In this document: one piece after another, positions 13,153 to 34,324 of the stretch | How the letters are laid out: each line of letters starts with the position of its first letter | How positions within the stretch are numbered: the stretch's first letter is position 1 | Origin: Caecitellus pseudoparvulus | Lineage: Eukaryota; Protista; Bigyra: Bicosoecida | Direction: 5' to 3' | Assembly: GCA_965644315.1 (NCBI GenBank) | Contig: CBFFRQ010000063.1 | Location: forward strand, 1 to 64,000 | DNA: 64,000 bases | Translations under genes and position numbers: made by a program | Notes under the pieces: generated by a model | Told to the model about the DNA's origin: nothing | The model's input: only the letters and a program-made list of their open reading frames with translations | Database searches by the model: none

Positions 13153-16100
13153 TCACACGGCTTCAGAGCTGGAGCCACTCTCCTCTTCCACACTGTCCGC
13201 GACGGCCAACGGCTGAGGTGCCCCCTCCACGCAACTGTCGTCGATGGGCTCCCCGCCTCCCTCCACACCCTCCCCCGACGCGCCCACCTTCGACACAGGC
13301 GCACCACCCTCACCTGACGAGCCACCACCAACCACACCCTCCACACTCTTCACAGGCATCCACACATCCCCAGACCTCAACAGACCAGCACCCACGAAGC
13401 ACCCCTGCAGCTTCACCTCCACCTCAGCGTACACCAACCGGTACACACCCACCACAGCCCCCGCCAGACCACCCAACGCAGCCAACAGACCCAGCAACGA
13501 CTGCAGCTCCGACACAGTGATGAAGCTCACCGACGGCGACAGCTGCACGCTCAACTGCAACGACACAGGCGTCAACTGCGGCACGAACCCTGACGTCGGC
13601 GCTGAACTGTCCAGGAAACCCGCCTGCTGGTCCACAAACGCCAACAAGTACCCCGTCGCATCGCTCCCGCCCTGTGTGTCCACCAGCACCTCACGTGTCG
13701 ACGTCAGCGTCCACTCGCCAGACCGCAGCCGCTGACTGGACGACGCGCCCACACTCCCCTGCAACACGCTCTTCGTCGGCTGCCCAGGTGTCGCGGGCGT
13801 CGATGCCCGTGTCGTCGTCATGGCCCACGCCACACTCTGTGCCGTGTACGGCAGACGCAGCTGAGCCCGCAGAGTCGTCGCCAGTGTGCACTCACTGCAG
13901 CTCGCAGCGTACTGGCACGCCAGAGCGCTGGCACCACTGGCTGCCTCCACGCGCTGCAGCGTCACGCTGGATGCCACAGCCCACGGCATGCGCACACCGT
14001 CCGCGCCGCCACCCGTGAAGTCCAGCGTGGACTGCGCACCTGGGCAGTCCCCTGCACTCTGCACACCGTCAATCACAGCCGCCACATCCAGGCGCCACTG
14101 GCTCGTCACGATGCCAGCCTCCTGTGCTGCAGACCCTGCTGGGTCGAACCGTGTCGTGACCAGGGTGTTGGCGGTGTAGTACTGCAGGAGGGAGCTGGCC
14201 AGGAAGCCACACAGCACCGCCACGAGGCTGATGGTGCAGGCACCACCCAAGACTGTACTGGCCTTGTGGATGGTGAAGCGGTCAGGGTAGTCGTGGTCCA
14301 GCGAGAAGGTGTCCAGCCACAGCAGGAAGCGCTTGGTGTGGGAGGAGCACTTGGCCAGGAGCAGGGCCAGCAGAGGAAGCAGCAAGGCGGCTCCGAGGGT
14401 CGCAGATACGACTGCGATGCCTGAGATCGTTGTCAAATCTCCAGCAACTGAGCCGGGTGAGTCTTCAGCCTTTTGCCCAGATGCACCCGGCCCTGCCTCC
14501 ACAGCCGACCCCGCCTCTGCCGCAGCAGCCAACGCTGGCGCAGACGCACGCAAGTCGCCCGGAGACAACACAGCGGACACAGTACCACCAGGACACAGTC
14601 CGCCGCGCGGACACTGCGCACATGATGGCGGCACGCCAAACGTACCTGCCGGACACCCAACACACCCACCACCCAACGGCGCCAACCCCGCACCGCACCT
14701 CACCTCCAAGCACTGCGTCGAGTTGTCCGGATCACGCACCTCACCCGCACCACACTGCGCAGGCGGCTCCTCAGGCGTCTCCACACACCCCTCCAGCCCA
14801 GACACACCACGCAGCCCCGCCGTGTCGGTGCCCTCAGGACACGCCAGGCACGCACTGGACACCAGGGCCCCACCCGGACCCGACCCGTACGTGTTCACAG
14901 GACACGCCTCACACAACACAGACCGCGCACGCACCGCATACGTCCCCTGCGCACACGGACTGCACGCCGACGCACCCGCCAACGCCGCAAATGACCCCGC
15001 CGCACACGCCTCACACGCCGACCCCGACGTCGCACCCTCCACCCTTGATGCCGTGCCCGGCGAGCAAGGCACGCACGACACCGACGTCTGACCCGGCAAG
15101 CTGTTGAACGTCCCAGCCGGGCATGGCGTGCAGCTCTCCTCCGCATCAGACTGACCCAGGGCGTTGTTGAAGGTGCCCACTGGACACGCCACAGCCTCAC
15201 CATCGGGACACACGTGCCCCAATGGACACGCCTCGCACTCCCCGCGCACCGTGGGACTCTGCCCCGCCGGACACACGACAGTGGACGGCGTGCTGCCCGG
15301 CACACAGCTCGCGATGGACGGCGTGCCGGCGCTGAACGTCGTCTGCCCAGCCGGGCAAGGCGCACAGGCGTCTGTCTCGTTGGTGCCGCCGCTGCGGGTG
15401 CCGTAGGTGCCGAGTGGGCAAGGGGAGCATGCGGCTTGGCCTGGGGCGTCGGTGAAGGTGCCGAGGGGGCAGAGGGAGCACTGTTGCTGTCCAGGGCCAG
15501 ATGAGAATGTGCCTGGCGCGCATGCAGCACAGTCACTTTTCTTGCTTGCACCTGGCTCTGACGATGCAGTGCCTGCTGGACAAGCCGTGCACTGCGAAGA
15601 AGTGGCGCCCAAGAATGGGCCGTATGTGCCTGATGGGCAAGGAGTGCACTGAGACACGTCGATCAGGCCGATTTCGTCGGAAAACGACCCTTTCGGGCAT
15701 GGACGGTCGACGTCGCCAGGGCAGTACTTTCCAGGTGAGCAAAGAGCGCACACTGGTCCAAATGTTGTCGCCACGGGCATTTCTTGTACCGGGCAGGAGC
15801 AGGCGCTGATGCTGATTCCCTCACCTTGAGAGTTGTACTCAACAAACACGCCCAACACCCGCGCACGCAGCTCCAGGACGTTTTCATGGTTCAAATCCTC
15901 CACAATGGCCCTTCCTGGAAAGCAATTAACCTGGCCCAAATTCTCACTGAAAACGCGCACCGCCATGCCGGAAGCCTTAATGTTGGCCAGCGACCCAACC
16001 GGCAAAGTGGGCATGTCATACTGAGTCAATGAAATCGACCCAGAAACAGAAAGGTTCTTCCAGGCTGAGCCACCAGGGGAAAAGTCAAGTTGGTGAAAAT

Positions 16101-17910
16101 GCACTTCCAAGTCACGCAACGCAAAGTCTGTGAAGTTCAACACGCCTGGGCTGCCTGTCACCGGGCCCAACATGTAGAGTCGGCCAACGTGGAAGCCACT
16201 CCACACTTCACTGGATATTTCAAGCGCCTCGTTCGCGGATCCAAACTCGATCTTTGCTTGTCCAGCCACAGAAAGGCCAGAGAAGGCGCCTGGGACAAGC
16301 CACTGGGATGCAGATGTGTACAAGCCTAAAATGGCAAACCCCCAATTCTCGACCGCTAATCCTGCAAAACTCCCCCACTCAAGCTCAAGCTCCGTCACTT
16401 CAATGATGGCAAATCGTGGCACAGCTGACAGCAAGCCTTGGAAAGCACCTTGTTCAATGGTCAAGCGGTAGGATGTCAGCCTATCCTTGCCCTCCTTGCC
16501 TAGCTCGCTACCAGCGTCGCTACTATCCTCTTTCATGCGGCGCCGACGTCCTTCGTTCTGACTGTCACCTCCGCCTGGGTGTGCGGCAATCTCAGCTCCA
16601 ACCAACACCCCACAGTTGAGGAGGGCCCCGTGAAATGCGCCTTCCTTGAGTGTGAACGAAGGTTCAAGAACTTTGGCTGCCGGCGAGTTCAAACCTTGCA
16701 CGGAAATCCCGAAGTTGCAATCCCGCGAAAAAACCGAGAATAACCGCCCCTCGCCGATATGCAGGCCTTCGAACGCACCAGCAGGGACCTGATCCTGGTT
16801 CAAGCAATCAACGCTCCACTCAGCGATTGTGGCCATGGGAAGGAATGCGCCTGACTGCACAGATAGGCAGCTGGCTGTCTGTTCGTTGGCTGGCACTCTG
16901 AGCGGTGATGTGGGGATAGAGATACCGCCCATAGCGCCAGGCTGAAGATGCCAGGTCGCGACACAGGTTACATCTGAAGGAGAGCTGGCCCCGAACTTCA
17001 ACTCAGCCCCAAAGCGGCTCCCGTTAAAAGCGGCGGCCTCCACGACGACCTCCACGGCGAACTCCTCCTCAGAACAGGAGCGCGTGATTCTGAAGGAACT
17101 GCTGGTTGCTGAAGCATCAATATTCGCAAAGGAACTCGCATTCAGCGCAAGGAGGGGGCCTTCAATTGACACTTCAGCGCTGCTGCCCAGCACCAGGCCA
17201 GAAAGCGCGTTGGGGCCGATGAAAGCCAGCTTTGATTTCCCTTGGTCTTTAATTCCAAGGGAGACATCGATGGTGGATCCTTCGAACATGAAACTTGGGA
17301 GAACTTCAAACGCCGGGTTTGCCAGGACGACGCCCCCAACCATCATCGAAGCAAAGGCGCGGGGCTGCAGAGGGCCGTTGAACTCGCTGGGAAAGGAGAG
17401 TTGCCCAGTCACTGTTGCCCCTCTGAAGGCAAAAGGCTGAACGGTCGTGTTAACGTGTGGAAAGCTCATGCTCACAAAGCTGGCGTCTTTGAAGGCGTCC
17501 GTCTCGATGAGGGAGAGCGGACACGCGGCGAAGTCCACATCGCCTTGGATGTTGGCATCCCGGAACGCGTGCTGGGAAATAGTGATGATTTGCTGGTCAG
17601 AAAAATCCAGCCTGCCATCAATTTGAACACCGGCAAACGTGTCTGGTGCAATGCTCGTGATGGCATCTCCGTCCGATGAGCAGGACAAGCCACCCCCGAT
17701 GAAGCTGCCGCACCCTGAGCAGTCTGAAAGGACCCCACTTGTAATTGTGCAACACGAAGAGCAAGTTGGACCGGCTGGTGCTGAGGCAGCGGCCTGTAGC
17801 ACGGCAAACAAACACGTGGCCAGGAGGGCACCTTGCAGTGGAACCACACCCAGCCTGTGCCGCAGGCGTTCCGCGTGCGGTTTGCTGGCTCTGCCGCCAA
17901 GATGTGCCAT
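13153..17910 (-). CDS. LRR(BspA-like)-GCC2/GCC3 Cys-rich 3-TM surface receptor, paralog 1
   Basis: Signal-like N-terminus, CSSCCTITSGVLSDC cap, many IxxxAFxG repeats, CFPGRA cap, CxxCPxGT(F/Y) repeats, three hydrophobic helices; single long ORF. Confidence 0.85.
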   Translation of the reverse strand: MAHLGGRASKPHAERLRHRLGVVPLQGALLATCLFAVLQAAASAPAGPTCSSCCTITSGVLSDCSGCGSFIGGGLSCSSDGDAITSIAPDTFAGVQIDGRLDFSDQQIITISQHAFRDANIQGDVDFAACPLSLIETDAFKDASFVSMSFPHVNTTVQPFAFRGATVTGQLSFPSEFNGPLQPRAFASMMVGGVVLANPAFEVLPSFMFEGSTIDVSLGIKDQGKSKLAFIGPNALSGLVLGSSAEVSIEGPLLALNASSFANIDASATSSSFRITRSCSEEEFAVEVVVEAAAFNGSRFGAELKFGASSPSDVTCVATWHLQPGAMGGISIPTSPLRVPANEQTASCLSVQSGAFLPMATIAEWSVDCLNQDQVPAGAFEGLHIGEGRLFSVFSRDCNFGISVQGLNSPAAKVLEPSFTLKEGAFHGALLNCGVLVGAEIAAHPGGGDSQNEGRRRRMKEDSSDAGSELGKEGKDRLTSYRLTIEQGAFQGLLSAVPRFAIIEVTELELEWGSFAGLAVENWGFAILGLYTSASQWLVPGAFSGLSVAGQAKIEFGSANEALEISSEVWSGFHVGRLYMLGPVTGSPGVLNFTDFALRDLEVHFHQLDFSPGGSAWKNLSVSGSISLTQYDMPTLPVGSLANIKASGMAVRVFSENLGQVNCFPGRAIVEDLNHENVLELRARVLGVFVEYNSQGEGISISACSCPVQEMPVATTFGPVCALCSPGKYCPGDVDRPCPKGSFSDEIGLIDVSQCTPCPSGTYGPFLGATSSQCTACPAGTASSEPGASKKSDCAACAPGTFSSGPGQQQCSLCPLGTFTDAPGQAACSPCPLGTYGTRSGGTNETDACAPCPAGQTTFSAGTPSIASCVPGSTPSTVVCPAGQSPTVRGECEACPLGHVCPDGEAVACPVGTFNNALGQSDAEESCTPCPAGTFNSLPGQTSVSCVPCSPGTASRVEGATSGSACEACAAGSFAALAGASACSPCAQGTYAVRARSVLCEACPVNTYGSGPGGALVSSACLACPEGTDTAGLRGVSGLEGCVETPEEPPAQCGAGEVRDPDNSTQCLEVRCGAGLAPLGGGCVGCPAGTFGVPPSCAQCPRGGLCPGGTVSAVLSPGDLRASAPALAAAAEAGSAVEAGPGASGQKAEDSPGSVAGDLTTISGIAVVSATLGAALLLPLLALLLAKCSSHTKRFLLWLDTFSLDHDYPDRFTIHKASTVLGGACTISLVAVLCGFLASSLLQYYTANTLVTTRFDPAGSAAQEAGIVTSQWRLDVAAVIDGVQSAGDCPGAQSTLDFTGGGADGVRMPWAVASSVTLQRVEAASGASALACQYAASCSECTLATTLRAQLRLPYTAQSVAWAMTTTRASTPATPGQPTKSVLQGSVGASSSQRLRSGEWTLTSTREVLVDTQGGSDATGYLLAFVDQQAGFLDSSAPTSGFVPQLTPVSLQLSVQLSPSVSFITVSELQSLLGLLAALGGLAGAVVGVYRLVYAEVEVKLQGCFVGAGLLRSGDVWMPVKSVEGVVGGGSSGEGGAPVSKVGASGEGVEGGGEPIDDSCVEGAPQPLAVADSVEEESGSSSEAV
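13181..15534. repeat. Constant cassette copy 1 (near-identical DNA shared with paralogs 2 and 3)
   Basis: 13181-14404 matches 18645-19868; 14477-15507 matches 19950-20980; 13456-14268 matches 29912-30724; 14510-15534 matches 30969-31993. Only scattered substitutions are visible. Confidence 0.95.
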
Positions 17911-18613
17911 TACTAAAAACGTGCCTGCTCTCTGGTTCTTGTTTAACGCCAACCTGCAAGAATGGAGTGGGGAGGGGGTGTGGCGTGTGCTGGGGCTCGA
18001 CATGTGCCACGGCTGCCGGCGGCGGCGTTTCACGGCTCAGAGGAGGTGCGGAGCGTCGATCTGTGTTCCCTGGCAGCCCAACGGCAGCCTCCAGAGAATC
18101 CCGCCGAGAGATTCTTTGTTGCGTATCGATTCGCTCAGACTCATGCCACCCTTTGGCAGAAGCACGGCGATACTCACAGAAGAGGAGCCGGTGGAGCTTG
18201 TCGGAGTAGCCGACGAAAATGAGAGATAGAGGGCGTGCACAAACGCACACTGAGCTCAGACACTTGAACAGAAACTGTGGCACAGAACGACTTTTGAAGA
18301 TACGGTACTCGAATGGGCTTGTCTGAGATTGGCAAATTGGACCATGGCGAGGCATTGTTTGTGCGGCGCTTGAGATGGGCAGCGCGTTGAGGCGGAACTG
18401 GCTCAGGTCTTGCGGGCCACTACCCGCAGGTCGATAGAGCGGCGAAGAACGAAACATAACACTGCATTGGAAACCACGCAACTGATTGCAAGCAGAAGGA
18501 AACTTGATTGCGCCCAAAGCGAGCCAGCATACCGAGAACCTGGGTAGGGTGTGCTGCCTTCAGCCGGAGCCAAGTCTGACCCAAGCCAGGAAACGTACAA
18601 GATGAGGGGCAAA

Positions 18614-21600
18614 TCAAAAGGAGATACTCCTTTCACGCACACCATCCTCTTCCACACTGTCCGCGACGGCCAACGGCTGATGTGCCCCCTCCACGCAACT
18701 GTCGTCGATGGGCTCCCCGCCTCCCTCCACACCCTCCCCCGACGCGCCCACCTTCGACACAGGCGCACCACCCTCACCTGACGAGCCACCACCAACCACA
18801 CCCTCCACACTCTTCACAGGCATCCACACATCCCCAGACCTCAACAGACCAGCACCCACGAAGCACCCCTGCAGCTTCACCTCCACCTCAGCGTACACCA
18901 ACCGGTACACACCCACCACAGCCCCCGCCAGACCACCCAACGCAGCCAACAGACCCAGCAACGACTGCAGCTCCGACACAGTGATGAAGCTCACCGACGG
19001 CGACAGCTGCACGCTCAACTGCAACGACACAGGCGTCAACTGCGGCACGAACCCTGACGTCGGCGCTGAACTGTCCAGGAAACCCGCCTGCTGGTCCACA
19101 AACGCCAACAAGTACCCCGTCGCATCGCTCCCGCCCTGTGTGTCCACCAGCACCTCACGTGTCGACGTCAGCGTCCATTCGCCAGACCGCAGCCGCTGAC
19201 TGGACGACGCGCCTACACTCCCCTGCAACACGCTCTTCGTCGGCTGCCCAGGTGTCGCGGGCGTCGATGCCCGTGTCGTCGTCATGGCCCACGCCACACT
19301 CTGCGCCGTGTACGGCAGACGCAGCCGAGCCCGCAGAGTCGTCGCCAGCGTGCACTCACTGCAGCTCGCAGCGTATTGGCACGCCAGAGCACTCGCGCCA
19401 CTGGCTGCCTCCACGCGCTGCAGCGTCACGCCGGATGCCACAGCCCACGGCATGCGCACACCGTCCGCGCCACCACCCGTGAAGTCCAGCGTGGACTGCG
19501 CACCTGGGCAGTCCCCTGCACTCTGCACACCGTCAATCACAGCCGCCACATCCAGGCGCCACTGGCTCGTCACGATGCCAGCCTCCTGTGCTGCAGACCC
19601 TGCTGGGTCGAACCGTGTCGTGACCAGGGTGTTGGCGGTGTAGTACTGCAGGAGGGAGCTGGCCAGGAAGCCACACAGCACCGCCACGAGGCTGATGGTG
19701 CAGGCACCACCCAAGACTGTACTGGCCTTGTGGATGGTGAAGCGGTCAGGGTAGTCGTGGTCCAGTGAGAAGGTGTCCAGCCATAGCAGGAAGCGCTTGG
19801 TGTGGGAGGAGCACTTGGCCAGGAGCAGGGCCAGCAGGGGAAGCAGCAAGGCGGCTCCAAGCGTCGCACCAAGCAGGAAGAGGTTCTCAAGGTTGCTCAA
19901 ACTGGAACTTCCGAAACCAGAGTTTCCTTGGCTGTCATCCGCTCCGTGTCCAGATGCACCCGACCCTGCCTCCACAGCCGACCCCGCCTCTGCCGCAGCA
20001 GCCAACGCTGGCGCAGACGCACGCAAGTCGCCCGGAGACAACACAGCCGACACAGTACCACCAGGACACAGCCCGCCGCGCGGACACTGCGCACATGATG
20101 GCGGCACGCCAAACGTACCTGCCGGACACCCCACACACCCACCGCCCACCGGCGCCAACCCCGCACCACACCTCACCTCCAGGCACTGCGTCGAGTTGTC
20201 CGGATCACGCACCTCACCCGCACCACACTGCGCAGGCGGCTCCTCAGGCGTCTCCACACACCCCTCCAGCCCAGACACACCACGCAGCCCCGCCGTGTCG
20301 GTGCCCTCAGGACACGCCAGACACGCACTGGACACCAGCGCCCCGCCCGGACCCGACCCGTACGTGTTCACAGGACACGCCTCACACGACACAGACCGCG
20401 CTCGCACCGCATACGTCCCCTGCGCACACGGACTGCACACCGACGCACCCGCCAACGCCGCAAATGACCCCGCCGCACACGCCTCACACGCCGACCCCGA
20501 CGTCGCACCCTCCACCCCTGATGCCGTGCCCGGCGAGCAGGGTACGCACGACACCGACGTCTGACCCGGCAAGCTGTTGAACGTCCCAGCCGGGCATGGC
20601 GTGCAGCTCTCCTCCGCATCAGACTGACCCAGGGCGTTGTTGAAGGTGCCCACTGGACACGCCACTGCCTCCCCATCGGGACACACGTGCCCCAACGGAC
20701 ACGCCTCGCACTCCCCGCGCACCGTGGGGCTCTGCCCTGCCGGACACACGACAGTGGACGGCGTGCTGCCTGGCACACAGCTCGCGATGGACGGCGTGCC
20801 GGCGCTGAACGTCGTCTGCCCAGCCGGGCAAGGCGCGCAGGCGTCTGTCTCGTTGGTGCCGCCGCTGCGGGTGCCGTAGGTGCCGAGTGGGCAAGGGGAG
20901 CATGCGGCTTGGCCTGGGGCGTCGGTGAAGGTGCCGAGGGGGCAGAGGGAGCACTGTTGCTGTCCAGGGCCAGATGAGAAGGTGCCAGGAGGGCATGTTT
21001 GGCAATCCTCCCTGCTTGTCGCCTTGCTCATCGGCGAGAAGGTGCCAATTCTGCACGGCAAGCACCCAGTCGAGTCCCTTCCGATGAAAGGGTTGTATGT
21101 TCCAGGTGGGCATTCCTCGCAGTCGGAGAGGTGTGAGAGTCCAAGTGTGTCTGTGAAGGTGCCCTTTGGACACCCTACTGCTCTTCCCGTTGGACAGGCA
21201 CGCCCAACGCCACACAGCATGCAGACAGGAGCGAGACCAATCGTAACGGGCATCTCCCCTGGCTGGCATGAACAAAGCTGGAAAAAGGTATCGCTTCCAA
21301 GCCTGCCAGTCACTCCTGCAGAGACGACGGCATTCTGGAACTCGGGAATTGTGCTTGGAGAGAGGTCAGGGAAGACAGCTCGACCGGGGAAGCACTGTGA
21401 TGACTCGATGGTGGCCGTCAAAACCTCGAGCTTGATCCCATTGCCAACTGTGGTTTCGTTCAGGCTGCCGACTTGAAAGCCGGGCATGTGCCTTGACTGG
21501 ATGACGAGCGACGTTCCGATGTGGACATTTCGCCACACACTTGCTTCGGGCCCAAATGACAGGCTGCTCGTGGAAATCTTCAGCGCACCGACGGCCACAT

Positions 21601-23662
21601 TCAACAAGCTGAGCTCTTCCACAACCCCGTCCAAGCTTCCGAGGATGTGCAACTCCCCAGCAGCATGCACGCCTTGCCAAACTGTGTGTGGCAGTCGGAA
21701 CAAATCAGGGCCCTCTGTTTGCCCGAAGCGAATGAAGACGCTCCCAGTGGCACCGACGCCCGAAAACACGCCGGGAACCAACCAGTTTGACGGATCTGTC
21801 TGCTCGCCATTGACCACAAACTTGCTTAGTCCGACGTTTACCCCAGCGAGGGAGTTGTTGTGCATCACCAAACTTGTTACGTTGGCAATTCTGAAGCCCT
21901 CCAAGTCGCCGCTGAGTCCCCGAAACGCATAGGGATGCACCTCCAAGTGGGATTCGCCACGGCCAAAGCAGCCATCACCGACCCCAGTACTGCCACCACC
22001 GTATCCGCCACCACCGTATCCGCCACCACCGTATCCGCCACCACCGTATCCGCCACCACCGTATCCGCCGCCACCGGATCCGCCACCACCGTATCCGCCA
22101 CCGCCGTATCCGCCACCGCCGGATCCGCCACCACCGTATCCGCCACCGCCGTATCCGCCACCGCCGGATCCGCCACCGCCGGATCCGCCACCGCCGTATC
22201 CGCCACCGCCGGATCCGCCACCACCGTATCCGCCACCGCCGTATCCGCCACCGCCACAGCCTGAACCGCTGCAGAGCCGCCTGAACGAGCCTCCCTCGAA
22301 CCCATGTTCGCCTGAGCTCGGGTCTGGCGTAGGTGTGCCTACGGTCATGCGGCAGCTGAGGCTCGCGCCTTCGAAAGCCCCAGGGTGCACAACTTGGCTA
22401 CTCACAATGTTGTTGCAGCTGGCCCCCAGCGCAACTGTGGAGGAAGATCCAAATACACAAGCTGGAGTGTACGATGAGCTGAACTCCTCACGAAGGACCA
22501 GCCCAGTGAAGGTATTCGGCAAGAATTCAGTCTGGTTGAAGCATTCCATAGCCCAGTTGTAGAAAATTGTCTGGGGCGCGAACGCCATTGGCTCGACAAA
22601 GAGACAGTTGCGAAAGTCGCCAAACCCCCCGACCTGGAAGGAGGCGCGCCTGGCATCAAAACCCTCGAACGCGAACGGCTCCAGCTTCCATAGCACGTTC
22701 TTGCCAGCAGTATCAGATCCAAGTTGGACTATTCCGGACGGCACCAGCGTGTTGTTGAATGCCCCAGCTTGGATCTGCACTGCGAGGTCGTCGCCCTCCG
22801 TCGGCGCCGCGGAACGCTTGATGAACCACTGGAACGCTGCAGAGTCTGGAAACGTCACATTCGAGAACGCGAGGGACTCAATTGTTTCGATTGGTCCTTC
22901 AATTGAGAACGATGTTGCGTCATCAGCGAACCGTAGGCCGCTGAAGGCGTTGGAGTGCACAACTCGGAGGCCCAGGCCTTCATCGTCACGCATTGCGAGA
23001 GACTCAGTTACGATTGTTCCTTCCAGAAGAAAGGGTGGAAGAGTTCCATTTGGCATGTCCAAAAACTGCAAGGTGTGCACTCGCATGTGAGCCAAGGCTC
23101 GAGCATGAAGCGTGCCTGTGAAGTCGCCTGGGAGCCAGAAGTTGAAGGTGACCTCGCAGCCCTCGAAAGCCAACGGCTCAACATCAAAGCTCATGCCGGT
23201 GAAGGTTAGTGACTGAAACCTTGCGTCCTTGAAAGCCCCTGTGCGGATAATGCTGAGGTCTGGCATGTCTTGAAACTGCAGCGTGCCAATGTCCGCGCCA
23301 GCGAAGGCGCCGTCGGCGAGCTCTGTGATTGGCTGCCCGGTGAACTGGACACCCTCCGGAAAAGAGATGTGGCTGAACGTCCCACTGGCAATGCTTGTGA
23401 TGGTGTCAGGTGAGGTGGCACCCTGGCTGCAGTCCAGCTGCCCGCTTGGCGCCCCGCCGGGGGGGCAACTGCAATCGGACAGCACGCCGGAAGTCAGGGT
23501 GCAGCAGTCCAGGCAGTCTTGCACGGCCTGGCCTGCTGCACAAGCCAGGTATCCGATCAGGATGAGAAGCACAGGGCCCCGCAAGCGCGTCGCTTCCCTC
23601 CTGGGCAAGCCTGGAGCGTGGAGCGGCGGCCGCAGAAACGCGAGCTGGCGATGGTGTCTCAT
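18614..23662 (-). CDS. LRR-GCC2/GCC3 3-TM surface receptor, paralog 2, with Gly-rich insertion
   Basis: Same architecture (CLDCCTLTSGVLSDC cap, LRR-like repeats, CFPGRA, Cys-rich repeats, 3 TM). Confidence 0.85.
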   Translation of the reverse strand: MRHHRQLAFLRPPLHAPGLPRREATRLRGPVLLILIGYLACAAGQAVQDCLDCCTLTSGVLSDCSCPPGGAPSGQLDCSQGATSPDTITSIASGTFSHISFPEGVQFTGQPITELADGAFAGADIGTLQFQDMPDLSIIRTGAFKDARFQSLTFTGMSFDVEPLAFEGCEVTFNFWLPGDFTGTLHARALAHMRVHTLQFLDMPNGTLPPFLLEGTIVTESLAMRDDEGLGLRVVHSNAFSGLRFADDATSFSIEGPIETIESLAFSNVTFPDSAAFQWFIKRSAAPTEGDDLAVQIQAGAFNNTLVPSGIVQLGSDTAGKNVLWKLEPFAFEGFDARRASFQVGGFGDFRNCLFVEPMAFAPQTIFYNWAMECFNQTEFLPNTFTGLVLREEFSSSYTPACVFGSSSTVALGASCNNIVSSQVVHPGAFEGASLSCRMTVGTPTPDPSSGEHGFEGGSFRRLCSGSGCGGGGYGGGGYGGGGSGGGGYGGGGSGGGGSGGGGYGGGGYGGGGSGGGGYGGGGYGGGGSGGGGYGGGGYGGGGYGGGGYGGGGYGGGSTGVGDGCFGRGESHLEVHPYAFRGLSGDLEGFRIANVTSLVMHNNSLAGVNVGLSKFVVNGEQTDPSNWLVPGVFSGVGATGSVFIRFGQTEGPDLFRLPHTVWQGVHAAGELHILGSLDGVVEELSLLNVAVGALKISTSSLSFGPEASVWRNVHIGTSLVIQSRHMPGFQVGSLNETTVGNGIKLEVLTATIESSQCFPGRAVFPDLSPSTIPEFQNAVVSAGVTGRLGSDTFFQLCSCQPGEMPVTIGLAPVCMLCGVGRACPTGRAVGCPKGTFTDTLGLSHLSDCEECPPGTYNPFIGRDSTGCLPCRIGTFSPMSKATSREDCQTCPPGTFSSGPGQQQCSLCPLGTFTDAPGQAACSPCPLGTYGTRSGGTNETDACAPCPAGQTTFSAGTPSIASCVPGSTPSTVVCPAGQSPTVRGECEACPLGHVCPDGEAVACPVGTFNNALGQSDAEESCTPCPAGTFNSLPGQTSVSCVPCSPGTASGVEGATSGSACEACAAGSFAALAGASVCSPCAQGTYAVRARSVSCEACPVNTYGSGPGGALVSSACLACPEGTDTAGLRGVSGLEGCVETPEEPPAQCGAGEVRDPDNSTQCLEVRCGAGLAPVGGGCVGCPAGTFGVPPSCAQCPRGGLCPGGTVSAVLSPGDLRASAPALAAAAEAGSAVEAGSGASGHGADDSQGNSGFGSSSLSNLENLFLLGATLGAALLLPLLALLLAKCSSHTKRFLLWLDTFSLDHDYPDRFTIHKASTVLGGACTISLVAVLCGFLASSLLQYYTANTLVTTRFDPAGSAAQEAGIVTSQWRLDVAAVIDGVQSAGDCPGAQSTLDFTGGGADGVRMPWAVASGVTLQRVEAASGASALACQYAASCSECTLATTLRARLRLPYTAQSVAWAMTTTRASTPATPGQPTKSVLQGSVGASSSQRLRSGEWTLTSTREVLVDTQGGSDATGYLLAFVDQQAGFLDSSAPTSGFVPQLTPVSLQLSVQLSPSVSFITVSELQSLLGLLAALGGLAGAVVGVYRLVYAEVEVKLQGCFVGAGLLRSGDVWMPVKSVEGVVGGGSSGEGGAPVSKVGASGEGVEGGGEPIDDSCVEGAHQPLAVADSVEEDGVRERSISF
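18645..20980. repeat. Constant cassette copy 2
   Basis: Direct repeat of 13181-15507 (offsets 5464 and 5473), interrupted by a divergent patch at 19869-19949. Confidence 0.95.
22001..22255 (-). repeat. 15-bp coding minisatellite, 17 units, encoding GGGG(Y/S)
   Basis: Units are G(T/G)ATCCGCCACC(A/G)CC on the + strand; 255 nt. Confidence 0.95.
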
Positions 23663-24418: not shown

Positions 24419-27400
24419 ATGCCACGGCAGGCTCGGCCCCGGAGCAGCAGGTCCAAGAGAAAGACTGAACCTGCTGCATCCAAGGTGGTGGAGCGGCACA
24501 TTCGGGATCCTTACGGCACGTTACAGGCAGCGCCGTCCAAGGAAGGTGAGGAGGGCGGAGCTCTTTGCAGCAAGTGCTGCCTCATCGTCACCCGCCGTTT
24601 CCGCCGCACTCCGTCGCACAGAGTGGGGGTCGAAGAGAAATGACTGCAGCAATCCGAACAACCTCTTTGGACTGGGTGAGCTGAAGAGGGGAGTGTGGGC
24701 GCCTCTTGCGACTGGTCTGACGGGACCAGGTCCACACCCACTGGCTCTGCTGCGGGAGCCATCCGTGCAAGCTGCCGGCCTGGTCAACCTCGGCGCCACG
24801 TGCTACTTGAACGCCCAACTGCAGGTGCTGTACCACTGTCTCCCTTTCCGGTGTGCTCTGTATGCCTGGAGCGGCACAGGCGGGAAGGCAGTGGCAGGTG
24901 CAGGCGGCGCAAGTGCTTCGGCAGCAGGTGCAGACCTGCTGCGCACACCTGCAGCAAGAGAGGCGCAGCTGCGCGTCATGCAGCAACTGTTCTGCACGAT
25001 GCAGTACTGCGTGGCGAAGTGTGCCTCACCTGCCCCGCTGGCTGCTGTGTTCCGGCTGGCGTCGGGTGTGCAGCAAGATGTGCAAGAGTTCTTGCAGCTG
25101 TTTATGCACCACCTGGAGACCACCTTGGCAAGCTCGGGTCCGGCGTACCTGCAGCGTGTAATTCCTCGGCTGTTCAGGGGGCGAAGCGCATGGGTGAACA
25201 AGTGTTTGACGTGTGACTACACCTCTCGAACTGGTGACGCGTTTTACGAAGTTCAGGTGCAGACGCAGGGGGTCAGCAGCCTCCACCAAGCGCTCGAGCA
25301 GACGTTTGGCACCGTGGATTTATCAGGCTCTGCTCAGTACTCGTGCCCTCGATGTCAGGACAAGCGCGATGCCGAGCGGTTCTTTCGTTTGGAGCAGCTG
25401 CCTCCCGTGCTGCACGTGCAGCTGGCACGGTACGGCTACGACATGGCGACAGGAGAGCGGAAGAAACTAAATGACGCCATCCACATCCCCGATGTCCTGA
25501 ACCTAAGCCAAACGGATGCACTGGCAGTTCCTCTTTCGACAGCGCCAGCGGCTACGCGAGTTCCCGTCTTGTACGAACTGACAGCGGTTCTCTACCACCA
25601 CGGGAAAAGTGCCAACTATGGGCACTACACGTGCGATGTGTGGGATTCTGAACGAGGACAGTGGCTGCACTGTGACGACGAGGCAGTTTCTGCGCTCACG
25701 GAGGGGGCTTCTCCTGCAGCAGGAGCAAAGCAGCCCAGGAGGGACACCGAACACCCGCTGCACGAAGACTCGAGTCCTTGTCTTGCCGACAAGTGTGGGG
25801 CAGCTGCGTTTGAGCAGGTTAGTGCCGAAACGCCGGCCCCGCCAACCCTGTGGCCGGCGGGCGCCGTCCCTGAAGTGGGCAGCGTACCGCAAGCAGCACT
25901 TGCGGCAGCCGTGTCGGGAATCAGCTCTGACCTTCCGCATGGCCCACCCCAGCCTGCTCCTGAACTGAGAAGCGCAACAGCTCAGGGTCCGATCGTATCT
26001 CAGGCACAAAGGGTGTATTCACTCGCTGCGAGTGGAGTGTCCGGGTACGTGTCGTGGTGCAGGCGCAGGCGACATCCCCGCATGTCCACCTGCGCTGGGA
26101 AAGGAACTCGAACTGCGTACATGTTAGTGTACAGTGCTGTTGACTCAGAACGAGCGGCCAAGTGGGAGGCTATGCAAGTCGCAGTGGGAGCTGGGCAAGT
26201 GCCAGTAGGCGACCATGCGGGCAGCCCCAGCGAAGCCGCTGCCACGACACCTGCAAGCTGCAGCAAGCCAAGCCGGAAGCGCAGCAGGCAACCCACTTCA
26301 GATGAAGAGCAGATCAAACTCCCATTGGATGCTTCCATGGCGGCGAGCGCTCAGGAGCAGACCGCGAGGTACATGTTTGATGTGCTTCCACCAGCGCCAC
26401 GCTCACCCTTCGAGAACTTAACGGCGGGATTCACCCCGAGCGATGGGAGTGCCGACAAAGAAGGTGTATCTTTGCTTCCTCCGAGTGACATGTTATCTGC
26501 TGTGCATGCTTGGAATAGGGTGCTATCGCGACGTGCGGCGGCATGGATTCGCCAAGAGCACGCAGCGCTTGCCTCGAGGAGGGCGAGGCAGCTGCTGTAC
26601 GAGGCACTTTTCATGTCATCCTCCCAGGCTGCTCCTCGCCCCCAAGCTGTCACAACCAACGCTCTTTCCCGCTGGCGGAGCCAAAAGGCACCTCCCCACT
26701 GGTTCTGGATTCCGGCTCGTTGGCTTGCAGCGTGGGTGCAGGGTGTGGAGGTGCAAACTGACGGCGACAGCCAGGGCATTGACGGGCCCGGGCACGCCAC
26801 ACCTGATGAAGGTACATCAGAAGGCCGGGGAACTTCCCCGATCTGTCTGTTATCCGATGAAGAAAGCTGTGCGACGGCGTGTGATGAAGAGGCTTCGAGC
26901 GGGTCAAGGAGCAAGCACGATGTTGCAGCACAAGAAGCCGAAGCCAAGCCAGCGGCTGACGGGGCAAGGCAGGACGTGGCCGACCTCTTGGAGCGGGCTT
27001 GTGCTGGAAAGTGCCTCGACCTGCCAGACTTGTGCAAGTCAGGTGTGTGGCTGTTCGACAAGGGGGGGCGAACCGCCTTTGGAGTGTCCACAGCAGCCTG
27101 CCCTGCGCTAGCTCACATGGACATGTCGCCCCTCCTCTCAACTCAGGCTGGGGGTGAGGTGGTCATGATGCCTGCAGCAGCCCGCTCTGCAAAACGCGTG
27201 ACTTCCGCTGTCTTTGAGGTCCTGCAGAACGCAGGTGGGACGGCTGTGTGCAAATTCCTCGGAGCGGAGAAGTTGCACGAGGCAAGCTGCCAAGCTTGGG
27301 CGGATGTGCAAGCTGCTGCTCGTGAAAGTTGCCCTTCCAGTCTTCTGAGCTGTGCAAAGGAAGCTGTCGAGCGTCTTTGTGACTGGAGCGGTGATACCGC

Positions 27401-29549
27401 TCCCAGCTGGGCCTTGGACGCGGCTCCAGGCACTGCAGAGCCAGCGGTGCCAACTTGGGCGGTGGGCACTTGGCTCTGCACAGAAGTTGACGTGGCACCC
27501 TTCCCTGTCCACCAGAAAAACTTCATGTCTCCAGACTTGCTTGGGAGCATTCTCGGAGAGCTGTCTTCCTCCAGAGACCAGCACGCTGAGGTGGAGGAGC
27601 TTCTGTCTGTCCTCGGGCAGCCGGAGCCGGTGCAGCTGACTCAAGCAGAGTTGCAAGACGCACGCGCAGCCTTCGTTGCAGACACCTTGTCCTCAGGTGA
27701 TTTTGCGGCAGTGAAGTCGGACACCCCCACGCCAAACACCACAAATCTTGACTCTTGTCACATCGAGGTGCTTGATCCAGACTTCCGCGCTCCAGAGTCG
27801 TGGAACCTGCCAGATGGGACCCTCCTTGATGTTGCAGCGGCCGAGGAGCCTGGGGCAACTGCAGAGACTCCCCAGGCGCTGGAGGTCATGCGCGCCCTGT
27901 CGTCTCTCGCGCTGTCCTGGACTGAATCACGGGGCGGAGAGCAACAGTATCTTCTCAGCCGAGCTTGGATCCGGCGCCTGCGAGACGAACAAGACGTAGC
28001 TGTGCATAGCCGTGCAAAGAAGAAAACCGGTGGGGGGCTGCTCGATCACTTTCGTGTTGACCCTAAGCCTGGCCCCCAGGACAGCCCACGCACGACCTGT
28101 GCGAACGCGGACCTCGTAAGCCCTGCAGGCTACCTTGCACATGGCTCTGCTCGCCGGTACGCTCGTGTCTCGGCTGAAGCCTGGCAGAGTGTGCTTGCCT
28201 TTGCCCCAGATGCGGTCCCCGTCCACCACCTCGTCGCGGTGACTGACCCATGGCAGGCTGCAGCTCAAGCTTCAAATCGGAAGGAAGCCTCGCAAGCTGC
28301 AGCCGCCCGACGGAGCCAGTTGGCCTCCGCTGCGCTGAATAGACTTGCGCTTCGCCGGAACCCATTTCCTGCCACCCACTCAGCCAAGCACGTTGGAACA
28401 TGCCCGCTTGCGCCTGGCTCGTACGCGCTCGTCCCAGCTGCCCTGCTTGCTTCCTGGCGTGCCTGGGTGAAGGAGGGCGCTGATGAGCCGCAGTTGTCTG
28501 GCTGCGCTTGGGAGGGTTTCTTCGTTGACGAGCCAGGTGCGACACCAAGCCTGGGCCTCCCAGACCACGTTCTGCAGTACCTCAGCAGCGTGGCGCAGGT
28601 GCGACTGCCTGCCCGGAACCCAGATGACACTGCCCTTGCCTGCCCGCTGTCTCCAGATGCCTCCCCCATGCCTCGGTCGGAAACTGGTGCAGGATCGGGC
28701 GCGGTTGGGTTCGAAGTGGTTGCCATGGACATGTGGGAAGATTTCCTCAAGGTGCAAGGGCTACTTCGAGGCCCTCGCCCCACTGCAGAAGTGCAGTCTG
28801 GGCGATGCGCCTGCCTGGATGCAGCCTCCCTTGACGCTGGAGGAGGCAAGCCTGCAATGCCTTCAGACACCACTTGCGGTGAAGGGTGCCCACACCTGTC
28901 CCCCAGGTCAACGCCAGCATACGCAGACTTCTGCGGATCCTTGGCGGCGCCCACGCTGCGTGTCTTGCCTGCACAGCAGGCCGCGATGCTTCCAGAACAC
29001 ATCACAGCCCACCACAGCACGTTTTTCCCCAACTCTGCGGAGAGTACCGAAGGCTGCATTTGGTGGACAGATCCACCACTGAACAGGGATGGCCTGGCAG
29101 CACAGCTGCTCCGCCTTCAAGCTGCCCGTGTGCGCTTCACGAATCGAGAGATTAATGTCCGACGCCTTGCGAGTGGTCAGGATCCTCCAACAGGTGCCGA
29201 GTGCACCGCAAGCGGGGAACGCCTTGGTGAAGGGGGCTCACGAGGAAGGCGGAGCCGGCGAAGCCGCAGCGCGGGCAGGCTTATCATCCTGGTTGACAGC
29301 ACTGACTCGTTGCACGAGTTGGCGCTCAAGTGCTACGAGGCTCACGGCTTCGGGCTCTGTGGACGTTTCTGGTTTCGGGGGACGCCCCTCTCTGCTGGAC
29401 AAACATTGGAGGAAGCAGGGGTACCAGCGGAGGGGACCATATTCTTCGAGGACGGCGACGAAGATATTCTGACGCTTGGCTTGGAGGGGTCTATGGTTTC
29501 CATGCCTGAAGCAGGCTTCGGTGGCTCGGCGTTCCAATCAACCGTGTGA
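24419..29549 (+). CDS. USP48: Ubiquitin-specific protease, USP48/UBP26-like
   Basis: Cys box GLVNLGATCYLNAQLQ, QQDVQEF, His box HHGKSANYGHY..W..DDE, DUSP-like segments, C-terminal ubiquitin-like domain and EAGFGGS end. One 5' intron likely. Confidence 0.85.
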
Positions 29550-29722
29550 TGCGCAGAGGCAGAACAGGTGCAGCCAGGCGCGGAAGGCCGTTGCCTGAAG
29601 GTTGACGCGCTGAGTGCCTTTGACGCGTCGTGTGCCCTTAGTCTGCTTAGGCAACGCCAAGGCTTGAGCCATGCATTGCATCGCACCAAGCTAGGTCAGT
29701 TCTAAAGAGTAAAAAAGCGTCC

Positions 29723-32700
29723 TTACTCTGAAGGTGGGGGTGTTGAGGCCAGCGGCGCTTCCTTCATCGGTTTCACTGTTCCTGCGGAGGAGCCTGACTC
29801 TTCCCCGGGAGGCACGTACAAATCTTCTGACCCCAACACACCAACATGGCTCAAAGCCGATTGCACTGGTAGTTCTCCGAACCTAAAAGCAAACGAAAAC
29901 ATCCCAAACGTAGCCCCCGCCAGACCACCCAACGCAGCCAACAGACCCAGCAACGACTGCAGCTCCGACACAGTGATGAAGCTCACCGACGGCGACAGCT
30001 GCACGCTCAACTGCAACGACACAGGCGTCAACTGCGGCACGAACCCTGACGTCGGCGCTGAACTGTCCAGGAAACCCGCCTGCTGGTCCACAAACGCCAA
30101 CAAGTACCCCGTCGCATCGCTCCCGCCCTGTGTGTCCACCAGCACCTCACGTGTCGACGTCAGCGTCCACTCGCCAGACCGCAGCCGCTGACTGGACGAC
30201 GCGCCTACACTCCCCTGCAACACGCTCTTTGTCGGCTGCCCAGGTGTCGCGGGCGTCGATGCCCGTGTCGTCGTCATGGCCCACGCCACACTCTGCGCCG
30301 TGTACGGCAGACGCAGCCGAGCCCGCAGAGTCGTCGCCAGTGTGCACTCACTGCAGCTCGCAGCGTATTGGCACGCCAGAGCACTCGCGCCACTGGCTGC
30401 CTCCACGCGCTGCAGCGTCACGCTGGATGCCACAGCCCACGGCATGCGCACACCGTCCGCGCCACCACCCGTGAAGTCCACCGTGGACTGCGCACCTGGG
30501 CAGTCCCCTGCACTCTGCACACCGTCAATCACAGCCGCCACATCCAGGCGCCACTGGCTCGTCACGATGCCAGCCTCCTGTGCTGCAGACCCTGCTGGGT
30601 CGAACCGCGTCGTGACCAGGGTGTTGGCGGTGTAGTACTGCAGGAGGGAGCTGGCCAGGAAGCCACACAGCACCGCCACGAGGCTGATGGTGCAGGCGCC
30701 ACCCAAGACTGTACTGGCCTTGTGCACGACATTTTTGTCAAGCACAAAGTGATCCAGGCTGTATGCATCGATGAACTTGACGGCCGAACGCAGGAATTTG
30801 AAGCATCGCGCGAGTGCCAGCGCAAGAATAGGGAGAAGCAAAGCGCACCCCGCAGTAACACCAACAACTGTAAATGTAGTTGCCTGTGGGAGTGCAGAGC
30901 TGTTTGCTCCTTCTGTGCCGTCATTCTCAGATGCTGCTGCACTGCTCCCGCCGGCTTCAATTTCAGCACCCGCCTCTGCCGCGGCCGCCAACGCTGGCGC
31001 AGACGCACGCAAGTCGCCCGGAGACAAAACTACAGACGCTGTGCCGCCAGGACACAGCCCGCCGCGCGGACACTGCGCACATGATGGCGGCACGCCAAAC
31101 GTACCTGCCGGACACCCCACACACCCACCGCCCACCGGCGCCAACCCCGCACCACACCTCACCTCCAGGCACTGCGTCGAGTTGTCCGGATCACGCACTT
31201 CACCCGCACCACACTGCGCAGGCGGCTCCTCAGGCGTCTCCACACACCCCTCCAGCCCAGACACACCACGCAGCCCCGCCGTGTCGGTGCCCTCAGGACA
31301 CGCCAGACACGCACTGGACACCAGCGCCCCGCCCGGACCCGACCCGTACGTGTTCACAGGACACGCCTCACACGACACAGACCGCGCTCGCACCGCATAC
31401 GTCCCCTGCGCACACGGACTGCACGCCGACGCACCCGCCAACGCCGCAAATGACCCCGCCGCACACGCCTCACACGCCGACCCCGACGTCGCACCCTCCA
31501 CCCTTGATGCCGTGCCCGGCGAGCAAGGCACGCACGACACCGACGTCTGACCCGGCAAGCTGTTGAACGTCCCGGCCGGGCATGGCGTGCAGCTCTCCTC
31601 TGCATCAGACTGACCCAGGGCGTTGTTGAAGGTGCCCACTGGACACGCCACTGCCTCGCCATCGGGACACACGTGCCCCAACGGACACGCCTCGCACTCC
31701 CCGCGCACCGTGGGGCTCTGCCCTGCCGGACACACGACAGTGGACGGCGTGCTGCCTGGCACACAGCTCGCGATGGATGGCGTGCCGGCGCTGAACGTCG
31801 TCTGCCCAGCCGGGCAAGGCGCACAGGCGTCTGTCTCGTTGGTGCCGCCGCTGCGGGTGCCGTAGGTGCCGAGTGGGCAAGGGGAGCATGCGGCTTGGCC
31901 TGGGGCGTCGGTGAAGGTGCCGAGGGGGCAGAGGGAGCACTGTTGCTGTCCGGGGCCAGATGAGAATGTGCCTGGCGCGCATGCAGCACAGTCGCGAGCA
32001 GAGGTCGCATTCTGTGTGGCCGAGGCAGTACCAGGGGGGCAGTTCAAACATCCCGCAGAGTTTGTCCCGACAAAAGGGTTGTAGGTGCCAGCTCGGCAGC
32101 CCTGGCATCCAGAGAGGCTAACCAACCCCACATCATCATTGTACGTTCCTTGAGGACAACCACGCGGACGCCCCGACGGACAAGCACTTCCCACCTGGCA
32201 AAGAACACAAATTGGCGCTGGCCCTCCGGACACCGGCATCTCTCCCGGAGGACAGGAGCAAACCTGGGGGAACTGGTTTCGTTCCAAGTCTGAGGCAATG
32301 CCCGCCCCCCCAACTTGCTCCAGAACAAATGGCACCGTTGAGGGGGAGACCGATGACAGGAATGCACGACCAGGAAAGCAGCTGATGGGCTGCCCAAGGC
32401 TCGCTTTGGCAGTCATGATGTGAAGGCCCCCGCCAGCCTGGACACCACTCAACACTCCTGCGGGAAGTTTGGGCAGTTCGAACTGCACAAGGTTGATCGT
32501 GTTGGCAACTGACACGTTTTGCCAAGAGCTGAAGTGGATATCCTCAGGATCAAACGAAAGCTGGCCAATGGCGAGGTCCAAGCTGCCGACAGCGAGGTCA
32601 GTGAAGTTCAGCACACTCTCGGCCATGTCGAACTCGGCCCTGATCTGCAGCGCTGCAAAGTCAGTCAGGCCGTCCCAGACTGAACTGGAGAACTGCACGA

Positions 32701-34324
32701 CTTCCCCCTTGGGGTCAAACTCCACCCTCACAGTGCCAGATCCTTGGAGGCCTGAAAACAACCCTGGCTTAATGAATGACGACACGTCTGACAGGGTACC
32801 TCGAATCTCCAGTTCGCCGTTCCCGATGTCCAACTGTCTGAACGACCCTTCGTATAAAAGAATGGTGCTGGTTTGCTCCACAGCAACCTCACCCACCGAG
32901 CCTCGAAGTCCAGAGAAGGCGTCGGGGGCAATCTCCAGCGTGGACGTTGGATGCCGGTCGCAGTTGGCTCCAGCAAAGAACGGGGGAGATGAATCATCGT
33001 AGTCCATGCCGAGCCTTAGTCCCACATTCAGAAGCGCCCCTGCAAATGCCCCTGACTCAATGATTGTTGTGTTGGGAAGGTGGAGGCAGCTGGCTCCCCA
33101 CGTCGCTTGGGAGGTGGCGCCAACGTTCAAGATAGAGTCCGTGGAGCCTCCTGGCAGTTCAGCGGCGATCTCGAGCCCAAGAAATGACTCGTCAGGAAAG
33201 GTCGTCTGGCTGAAGCAGGGCACTCTCCACGCTTGAAAGGTTGCTTTGGGGACGAAAGCGCGGGGTTCCACACTCAGACAAGCATATGGCAAGCCATCTT
33301 CGTCAGACAGCTGGCCAACAATGAAGGCCCCTTTACTCACATCCAGTCCACCAAACCCACCTTCCTCGATGTGCCACCGGAAAAAGACACCTTGATGCTG
33401 CGATACAAATCTCAGCTGGGCCTCGATGCTGGTTCCCGAAAACGCGCCGTCGCGGACGACAACTTCATGAAACGCACCACTCGGCAGAGTGTTTGTCGCC
33501 AGCAAAACCATTTCAGCGGAGCTCGGCAAGGTCATGTTTGCAAATGCTCCAGCATCAATGACAGCAAAAGGGGCAATGACCCGGAACAGCGTCGCCGAGC
33601 TTGCAAACGCTAGCTCTGCGAAGGCATTGGCGGGCAACGTGCTGAGCACTGATCCCCCAGACACCTCCAGCACATCAGCCACAACAGTTCCTTCAAGCAA
33701 GTAGCTAGGCAGGGGAGAAGCTGTTGCATGCAAATCCAGTGTCAAGTTGAAGAGGGACATCTTGGCCAGGGCTTGCTCTCGGAGCGTTCCTTGGAAGGGT
33801 CTTGGGAAAGAAAGCGCCGACGAGAACATAGCCCCTTCAAATGCAAGGCTCTTGACGTCAAAGGGGGCCTCTGGGAGTACGATTTCGTGGACAGTAGCAT
33901 CTTTGAACGCTCCAGGGTGGATGGTGGCGAGGTTGATACAACCCTTGAAGCTCAGCACCTCCCCAACCTCCACGCCTCGGAACGAGTGCGTGTCCAAGGT
34001 CGTCAGGCCCTGCGCATCGAAGTCGATGCCCCCTTGGAATGAAACCCCCTGGAAGGCGTCTGCTGCTATTGTGGAGATCGCCGGCGAATTCGCCGCAGAG
34101 CAATCAAGCTTGTCGGCTGAGGCGCCGGGGCAGCCGGAGCAAGTAGATAGGACTCCCGATGAAATGGTGCAGCAGGAGTTGCATGGTTGAACGCCTTGGC
34201 CTAGAGCACTTGCTAGCATGCTCAGAAGAATAAAAACTTGAACTGCATATGGGATGCTTGCCCGGGCGCGGTCCTGGGCGGTGCCGACCTGCCCTGCCTT
34301 GCTGAAACGCCGACCACTGCGCAT
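29723..34324 (-). CDS. LRR-GCC2/GCC3 3-TM surface receptor, paralog 3
   Basis: Same architecture (CNSCCTISSGVLSTC cap etc.); has its own TM1 region and cytoplasmic tail. Confidence 0.85.
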   Translation of the reverse strand: MRSGRRFSKAGQVGTAQDRARASIPYAVQVFILLSMLASALGQGVQPCNSCCTISSGVLSTCSGCPGASADKLDCSAANSPAISTIAADAFQGVSFQGGIDFDAQGLTTLDTHSFRGVEVGEVLSFKGCINLATIHPGAFKDATVHEIVLPEAPFDVKSLAFEGAMFSSALSFPRPFQGTLREQALAKMSLFNLTLDLHATASPLPSYLLEGTVVADVLEVSGGSVLSTLPANAFAELAFASSATLFRVIAPFAVIDAGAFANMTLPSSAEMVLLATNTLPSGAFHEVVVRDGAFSGTSIEAQLRFVSQHQGVFFRWHIEEGGFGGLDVSKGAFIVGQLSDEDGLPYACLSVEPRAFVPKATFQAWRVPCFSQTTFPDESFLGLEIAAELPGGSTDSILNVGATSQATWGASCLHLPNTTIIESGAFAGALLNVGLRLGMDYDDSSPPFFAGANCDRHPTSTLEIAPDAFSGLRGSVGEVAVEQTSTILLYEGSFRQLDIGNGELEIRGTLSDVSSFIKPGLFSGLQGSGTVRVEFDPKGEVVQFSSSVWDGLTDFAALQIRAEFDMAESVLNFTDLAVGSLDLAIGQLSFDPEDIHFSSWQNVSVANTINLVQFELPKLPAGVLSGVQAGGGLHIMTAKASLGQPISCFPGRAFLSSVSPSTVPFVLEQVGGAGIASDLERNQFPQVCSCPPGEMPVSGGPAPICVLCQVGSACPSGRPRGCPQGTYNDDVGLVSLSGCQGCRAGTYNPFVGTNSAGCLNCPPGTASATQNATSARDCAACAPGTFSSGPGQQQCSLCPLGTFTDAPGQAACSPCPLGTYGTRSGGTNETDACAPCPAGQTTFSAGTPSIASCVPGSTPSTVVCPAGQSPTVRGECEACPLGHVCPDGEAVACPVGTFNNALGQSDAEESCTPCPAGTFNSLPGQTSVSCVPCSPGTASRVEGATSGSACEACAAGSFAALAGASACSPCAQGTYAVRARSVSCEACPVNTYGSGPGGALVSSACLACPEGTDTAGLRGVSGLEGCVETPEEPPAQCGAGEVRDPDNSTQCLEVRCGAGLAPVGGGCVGCPAGTFGVPPSCAQCPRGGLCPGGTASVVLSPGDLRASAPALAAAAEAGAEIEAGGSSAAASENDGTEGANSSALPQATTFTVVGVTAGCALLLPILALALARCFKFLRSAVKFIDAYSLDHFVLDKNVVHKASTVLGGACTISLVAVLCGFLASSLLQYYTANTLVTTRFDPAGSAAQEAGIVTSQWRLDVAAVIDGVQSAGDCPGAQSTVDFTGGGADGVRMPWAVASSVTLQRVEAASGASALACQYAASCSECTLATTLRARLRLPYTAQSVAWAMTTTRASTPATPGQPTKSVLQGSVGASSSQRLRSGEWTLTSTREVLVDTQGGSDATGYLLAFVDQQAGFLDSSAPTSGFVPQLTPVSLQLSVQLSPSVSFITVSELQSLLGLLAALGGLAGATFGMFSFAFRFGELPVQSALSHVGVLGSEDLYVPPGEESGSSAGTVKPMKEAPLASTPPPSE
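29912..31993. repeat. Constant cassette copy 3
   Basis: Two blocks (29912-30724 and 30969-31993) near-identical to copies 1 and 2, separated by divergent 30725-30968. Confidence 0.95.

Follow-up and report, generated by a model that had tools for sequence, protein, structure and literature searches.

The window analysed here is a 64,000-nucleotide stretch of the bicosoecid protist Caecitellus pseudoparvulus (positions 1 to 64,000 of contig CBFFRQ010000063.1, assembly GCA_965644315.1), and it carries three genes, designated A, B and C, that encode large receptors fused to an unusual membrane module. As a preliminary description of the sequence had stated, the three are same-strand, intronless paralogs, each an uninterrupted open reading frame (ORF), and their surface-receptor layout with a leucine-rich repeat (LRR)-type N-terminus is likewise borne out. 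A signal peptide opens each receptor and is followed by an ectodomain of ~1100 residues, comprising the LRR-type part and a stalk of GCC/ephrin-receptor-like repeats, after which come three hydrophobic helices. The start of gene A was set at 17907 on the basis of a stop codon located immediately upstream in strain Z, which together with strain K provides the comparisons reported below. The DNA flanking the three genes is not shared between paralogs.

13153-17907, minus strand: gene A; an LRR-type ectodomain behind a signal peptide, then GCC stalk, three-helix module of PAC/ERGIC fold and tail
18614-23662, minus strand: gene B; architecture as gene A
24225-29549, plus strand: large ubiquitin-specific protease gene, unrelated to the receptors, that separates B from C (Pfam UCH, E 6.5e-39)
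29723-34324, minus strand: gene C; architecture as gene A, but helix 1, cytoplasmic loop and tail are particular to C
15802-17770, minus strand: divergent ectodomain of A (boundaries approximate); BspA-like LRR over the N-terminal ~200 residues, then irregular AFxG repeats
21275-23530, minus strand: divergent ectodomain of B (boundaries approximate)
32261-34195, minus strand: divergent ectodomain of C (boundaries approximate)
21992-22255, no strand assigned: in-frame 15-bp tandem repeat (17.4 copies, GGGGY/S) within one of the loops of B

The full architecture of A, B and C is also present in a distant homolog, P0003 (1769 residues). Exact look-ups of the three receptors gave no match, and word-index homolog searches with a full-length gene came back blank, a result of little information given that the method is length-limited. 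Scans of Joint Genome Institute (JGI) metagenomes and of viral, prokaryotic-genome and phage data gave no match either, and at that sensitivity indicate no bacterial or viral origin.

The paralogs had been described as old, with ectodomains that cannot be aligned by eye at the DNA level, and both statements hold. The ectodomains are 34-38% identical in pairwise protein comparisons, blastn finds no match among them, and their fourfold sites, mostly ~10-45% identical in 50-codon windows, are saturated. The proposed assignment to BspA/TpLRR surface proteins stands for the N-terminal portion: A, B and C share xxIxxxAFxG repeats with these proteins, but on sequence grounds the BspA-type signal is convincing solely in the first ~200 residues, where the repeats are regular. 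A regular ~23-residue repeat is not sustained along the whole ectodomain, the AFxG spacing being 22-25 residues in places, mostly early, and 22-99 residues or more later, and Pfam LRR_5 (PF13306) scores lie at or under the gathering cut-off of 27.7 bits (A 27.7, E 2.8e-6; B 25.7; C 16.6). Profile searches of the ectodomain match PcpA (best PDB sequence match, E 1.6e-7), LGR4 and other LRR structures. The GGGGY/S repeat of gene B has ~5 units in strain K versus 17 in the window, and is preceded by an RRL motif; ectodomain loops of A and P0003 carry RRRR and KRSRQLQ, respectively, and all three motifs are possibly proteolytic processing sites.

Between strains, orthologous ectodomains are under purifying selection and are not hypervariable, with ratios of nonsynonymous to synonymous divergence (dN/dS) of 0.08-0.34. 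Ectodomain dS is 0.14-0.22 between the window and strain Z, compared with 0.00-0.03 at three distal genes, and 0.16-0.33 between the window and strain K, compared with 0.07 for photolyase; the baseline genes behind these contrasts are few, the samples are siblings, and the tests assume independent sites. The spacer separating B from A (17908-18613) is 11-15% diverged between strains, versus a few percent in the downstream flank. Such unusually deep alleles fit balancing selection at a recognition locus, in line with the recognition role originally put forward for these genes. A syntenic contig, 93-96% identical to the window, occurs in an assembly labelled 'Symbiodinium sp. KB8' (GCA_905221625.1), probably through contamination; the gene on this contig bears the name 'Scube1' and has a predicted intron that crosses an assembly gap.

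Gene conversion of the stalk and membrane module

Within the GCC array, past its first few repeats and not at the LRR boundary, the paralogs switch sharply from divergent to nearly identical sequence. The junction lies at 15534 in A and 31993 in C for that pair, and at ~20990-20997 in B. Downstream of it DNA identity is 96-99% and dS between paralogs is 0.02-0.11, so that the abrupt switch noted in the preliminary description, synonymous sites included, is confirmed, and dS is far from uniform along the genes. The single constant block of about 2 kb envisaged there gives way to blocks broken by islands:

14477-15534, minus strand: converted block 1 in A (later GCC repeats)
19950-20997, minus strand: converted block 1 in B
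30969-31993, minus strand: converted block 1 in C
14398-14476, minus strand: unconverted juxtamembrane island in A (B counterpart 19862-19949; fourfold-site GC ~0.4)
13181-14397, minus strand: converted block 2 in A, from helix 1 into the tail, common to B (13456-14268 also common to C)
18645-19861, minus strand: converted block 2 in B
29912-30724, minus strand: converted block 2 in C, running from helix 2 through the beta-sandwich domain to the outer half of helix 3
30725-30968, minus strand: C-specific island; linker, helix 1, cytoplasmic DxFxLxH loop
29723-29911, minus strand: C-specific island; inner half of helix 3 and tail

The stretch common to A and B spans 2.36 kb and is interrupted by the ~80-bp juxtamembrane island, which differs among all three genes; the match resumes at helix 1 and runs to ~ten codons before the stop codon. 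In C the common stretch consists of two separate blocks (30969-31993 and 29912-30724). The linker, first helix, cytoplasmic loop and tail are particular to this gene, which rejoins the A/B match just before helix 2 and leaves it in the middle of helix 3.

Several lines of evidence identify the process. The tails of A and B differ from each other at 1 of 275 bases and from their own orthologs at 13 and 21 of 275 (p 0.002 and 8e-6); these paralogous tails being closer than orthologs, their homogenisation postdates the split between strains. Site patterns among five copies form a mosaic that fits no single tree, with the proviso that the short-read copies may be consensus sequences, and sites that set the three window copies apart from both other strains were excluded as proof of conversion, as they are possibly ancestral to those strains; the tail comparison took their place. 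Fourfold-site GC within gene C is 0.75 in converted versus 0.57 in unconverted sequence (p 2e-8), and reaches 0.71 in the converted helix 1 and tail of A versus 0.45 in the unconverted linker, helix 1 and tail of C. As a control, P0027 and P0033, dispersed paralogs of another organism, show a gradient in protein identity with a DNA identity of only 65%; constraint alone therefore does not give the pattern seen in A, B and C. We conclude with high confidence that the stalk and module undergo recurrent, ongoing ectopic gene conversion within the cluster.

The pattern of conversion is itself of a known kind, displaying the features of concerted evolution: tract paralogs closer than orthologs, silent identity and raised GC. 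In clustered protocadherins, membrane-proximal regions are homogenised by gene conversion and GC at third codon positions is raised (PMC1852091). The teleost and human clusters resemble the present locus in combining tandem receptors with divergent distal domains and a converted membrane-proximal part (PMC1852091), but the domains of A, B and C are unrelated to theirs, there are no spliced constant exons, and the converted part is a multi-pass module with internal unconverted islands. P0016 and P0018 were considered as a second homogenised pair and rejected, being the same gene with different ends. Two paralogs from one metagenome (L006, 10001-13936; L007, 10001-15250) combine a long N-terminus, classical LRR, GCC repeats and the module, and are not homogenised.

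Fold and relatives of the membrane module

The constant part had been interpreted as a stalk and membrane module. The GCC stalk stands, with ~ten repeats per receptor (Pfam E 1e-22 to 1e-26), while the membrane portion amounts to more than an anchor, as its model resembles, at a distance, the two-helix beta-sandwich fold of the PAC/ASIC/Erv41 kind:

29846-30877, minus strand: the C module with its three helices; AlphaFold 2 and Foldseek relate the part from helix 2 through the beta domain to helix 3 to the PAC/ASIC/Erv41 fold

In the AlphaFold 2 model (predicted local distance difference test, pLDDT, 92), helix 2 leads through a strand into a beta-sandwich, from which a long return strand runs to helix 3; modelled alone, the extracellular domain is almost all beta (pLDDT 91). 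Foldseek places 20 PAC/TMEM206 chains first for the module (E 9.5e-10 to 2e-6), followed by ASIC (3e-6) and P2X7 (1e-4), and for the extracellular domain alone it returns PAC first (9e-8), Erv41p next and then ASIC. The PAC structures matched are exclusively from vertebrates. Sequence searches of the module against Pfam, NCBIfam and PDB gave no significant match (for PAC, none up to E 10). CDH-cyt was rejected as its identity, given a weak Pfam match (E 0.002) and its absence from the top 50 Foldseek matches.

PAC is a trimer in which the second transmembrane helix (TM2) lines the pore and the outer domain resembles that of ASIC/ENaC (PMC9351481). With the proton-activated chloride channel PAC/TMEM206 (ASOR) and with DEG/ENaC/ASIC, its top Foldseek matches, the module shares the succession of helix, beta-rich extracellular domain and helix, and two helices enclosing a beta-rich palm/beta-ball, as in the PAC fold, are recovered with E 1e-9, probability 1.0 and TM-score <0.4. 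It differs from PAC and ASIC in its low identity (5-10%; TM-scores 0.24-0.37), in the extra upstream helix that puts the ~1100-residue LRR/GCC ectodomain outside, and in the lack of HG or GAS motifs and of a helical thumb. DEG/ENaC/ASIC channels carry a His-Gly motif ahead of the first transmembrane helix and a GAS belt in TM2; in the module family the His is kept in 28 of 30 sequences with no Gly after it, and the helix reads GVY or GMF. Neither their helical Cys-rich thumb nor Pfam ASC is found in the module, its model being beta-rich and without a Pfam match, and P2X receptors provide no close fold match (Foldseek E 1e-4, TM-score 0.19) and no Pfam match.

Two further systems invite comparison. 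The retrieval receptors Erv41/Erv46 (ERGIC1-3) have a beta-sandwich that may be related (TM-score 0.44-0.46) and a similar motif ahead of the first helix, but A, B and C have no COPIIcoated_ERV Pfam match and no KKxx tail, and bear a large fused sensor ectodomain. Apicomplexan CRMPs, which act as a heterodimer required for rhoptry secretion, place Cys-rich ephrin-receptor-like repeats ahead of a multi-pass domain (PMC9815656); they differ in having nine helices, no LRR in their domain lists and no comparable beta-sandwich described.

A representative search returned 33 matches; ~30 are environmental proteins that contain the module in full or in part, and Asp, His, Gly, Asn, Cys and Gln positions are kept among them. 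GCC repeats lie upstream of the module in 9 of 10 relatives tested, and the N-termini vary, with the LRR type of A, B and C in P0003, classical LRR in P0027 and unrelated sequence in P0035. Helix 3 has a near-invariant Gly and small residues along one face; its inner end carries Arg in A and B, Ser in C and R/K/H in 16 of 30 relatives, a position that may correspond to K319, the basic residue at the inner end of the PAC pore helix. A DxF..T.GG..T motif is located ahead of helix 2. Three relatives have Pfam WW-domain matches (best E 1.5e-4) in what is apparently the cytoplasmic tail, which suggests signalling partners. Judging from the models, the module is a distant relative of the PAC-ASIC-P2X-Erv41 structural family that falls within none of the named families there, and we regard this fold relationship, together with a receptor role for A, B and C, as very probable.

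Proposed output and rival explanations

The reading we favour, to which we assign a probability of roughly 0.55, is that A, B and C are long-diverged surface receptors that carry a trimeric, channel-like output of their own, with conversion preserving compatibility. The signal peptide would place the LRR domain and GCC stalk outside the cell, and helix 1, which anchors the chain, would bring it back to the cytoplasm, leaving the two-helix module oriented like a PAC/ASIC subunit. Three modules may come together in a homo- or heterotrimer whose pore is lined by helix 3, and binding or pulling at the LRR would be relayed through stalk and helix 1 to gate the trimer. Conversion would persist where subunits must stay alike to fit mixed trimers (the outer domain and outer pore half) and be excluded from the sensors and from the cytoplasmic parts of C (loop, inner pore half and tail), so that several specificities would feed one ionic output. 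The locus offers a clean case of conversion boundaries tracking protein topology, and the receptors would offer a testable molecular candidate for the means by which prey, partners or viruses are recognised, and rapidly answered, in a microbial eukaryote.

Several observations weigh against this reading. All TM-scores of the module are below 0.5, with identities of 5-10%; the best TM-score (0.44-0.46, rmsd 7.3) belongs to Erv41p, which is not a channel; no Pfam or PDB sequence search links the module to any channel; weak, sub-threshold ERGIC_N Pfam matches occur in 3 of 32 family members; dN/dS gives no sign of positive selection on the LRRs; and conversion may merely persist wherever sequence stays conserved, without selection for subunit compatibility. 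Some of these points favour an alternative that we consider possible but doubtful, in which the genes and their conversion are the same but the module conducts no ions and acts, like Erv41/Erv46, as a scaffold for oligomerisation or trafficking, the proteins serving as adhesion, prey-capture or cargo receptors. To the Erv41p match (3zlc, TM-score 0.44/0.46, E 2.6e-4; second chain E 2.7e-5) and the ERGIC_N matches it adds the motif before helix 2, which we take to resemble the ERGIC N-terminus. Against it, PAC ranks first by E-value in both Foldseek searches, the tails of A, B and C lack a C-terminal KKxx retrieval signal, and an LRR/GCC ectodomain of 1100 residues is better suited to the cell surface.

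Should the channel-like reading hold, the receptors might represent an undescribed protist class of receptor-operated trimeric channels of PAC/ENaC fold, with interchangeable LRR or other sensors fused to the subunit, paralogs mixing combinatorially because gene conversion holds their assembly surfaces identical, and balancing selection keeping old sensor alleles; we advance this only tentatively. In the literature searched, the coverage of which is incomplete, no PAC/ENaC-fold subunit is described as joined to a receptor ectodomain, and the combination of receptor and PAC/ERGIC-fold module appears undescribed. If the module is of PAC fold, its wide, unannotated occurrence in protists would be relevant to how trimeric channels arose and how they are connected with ERGIC proteins.

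The cassette exchange proposed alongside gene conversion fares less well than conversion, which the tails, GC content and mosaic sites uphold. A true variable/constant system, with programmed or site-specific recombination swapping ectodomains ahead of a constant module, could account for a sharp first junction near the same place in A, B and C and for the different sensors that the module bears across species. It is nonetheless improbable: junctions are staggered by gene pair, C is interrupted by three separate islands, the 64-kb window is free of orphan cassettes and fragments, the ectodomains evolve with dN/dS of 0.08-0.34, and the order and pairing of A and B are unchanged in three assemblies, where the new variable/constant pairings anticipated between strains are not seen.

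An assembly artefact is more improbable still. Short-read assemblies of the two other strains do break and mis-scaffold at the converted blocks, but collapsed or mis-polished repeats are unlikely given that the window copies are not identical, differing at 0.8-2.6% of block sites, mostly silently. The strain Z and K assemblies independently read through the A junction, those of C being seen in the window only; the K contig bearing B stops exactly at the junction, as a real repeat would cause, and P0003 has the same full architecture. In one scaffold (L001) the converted repeat has led to mis-scaffolding, the sequence being circularly permuted around it. Finally, a recent duplication of the entire gene, after which positive selection changed the ectodomain very fast, would yield near-identical 3' halves but is hardly credible, as protein-level selection cannot explain saturated silent sites, orthologous ectodomains have low dN/dS and paralog flanks are unshared.

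Neighbouring genes in the window

Scans for tRNA genes and Rfam families found nothing in the window. A plus-strand gene at 49113-52247 encodes a 1045-residue single-pass surface protein with repeated Cys-x-Trp units, CUB-like by eye and without a Pfam match, and a low-complexity minus-strand ORF rich in Gly, Gln and Met, which contains tandem repeats of 15 bp and 9 bp and likewise has no Pfam match, lies at 53680-55149. The remaining genes recognised are the following:

8727-10112, plus strand: photolyase
10834-11337, plus strand: Rab-type GTPase
34967-37168, minus strand: SelO
37388-43393, minus strand: C2-domain protein
59262-60149, plus strand: lysine methyltransferase
63294-63788, minus strand: core histone

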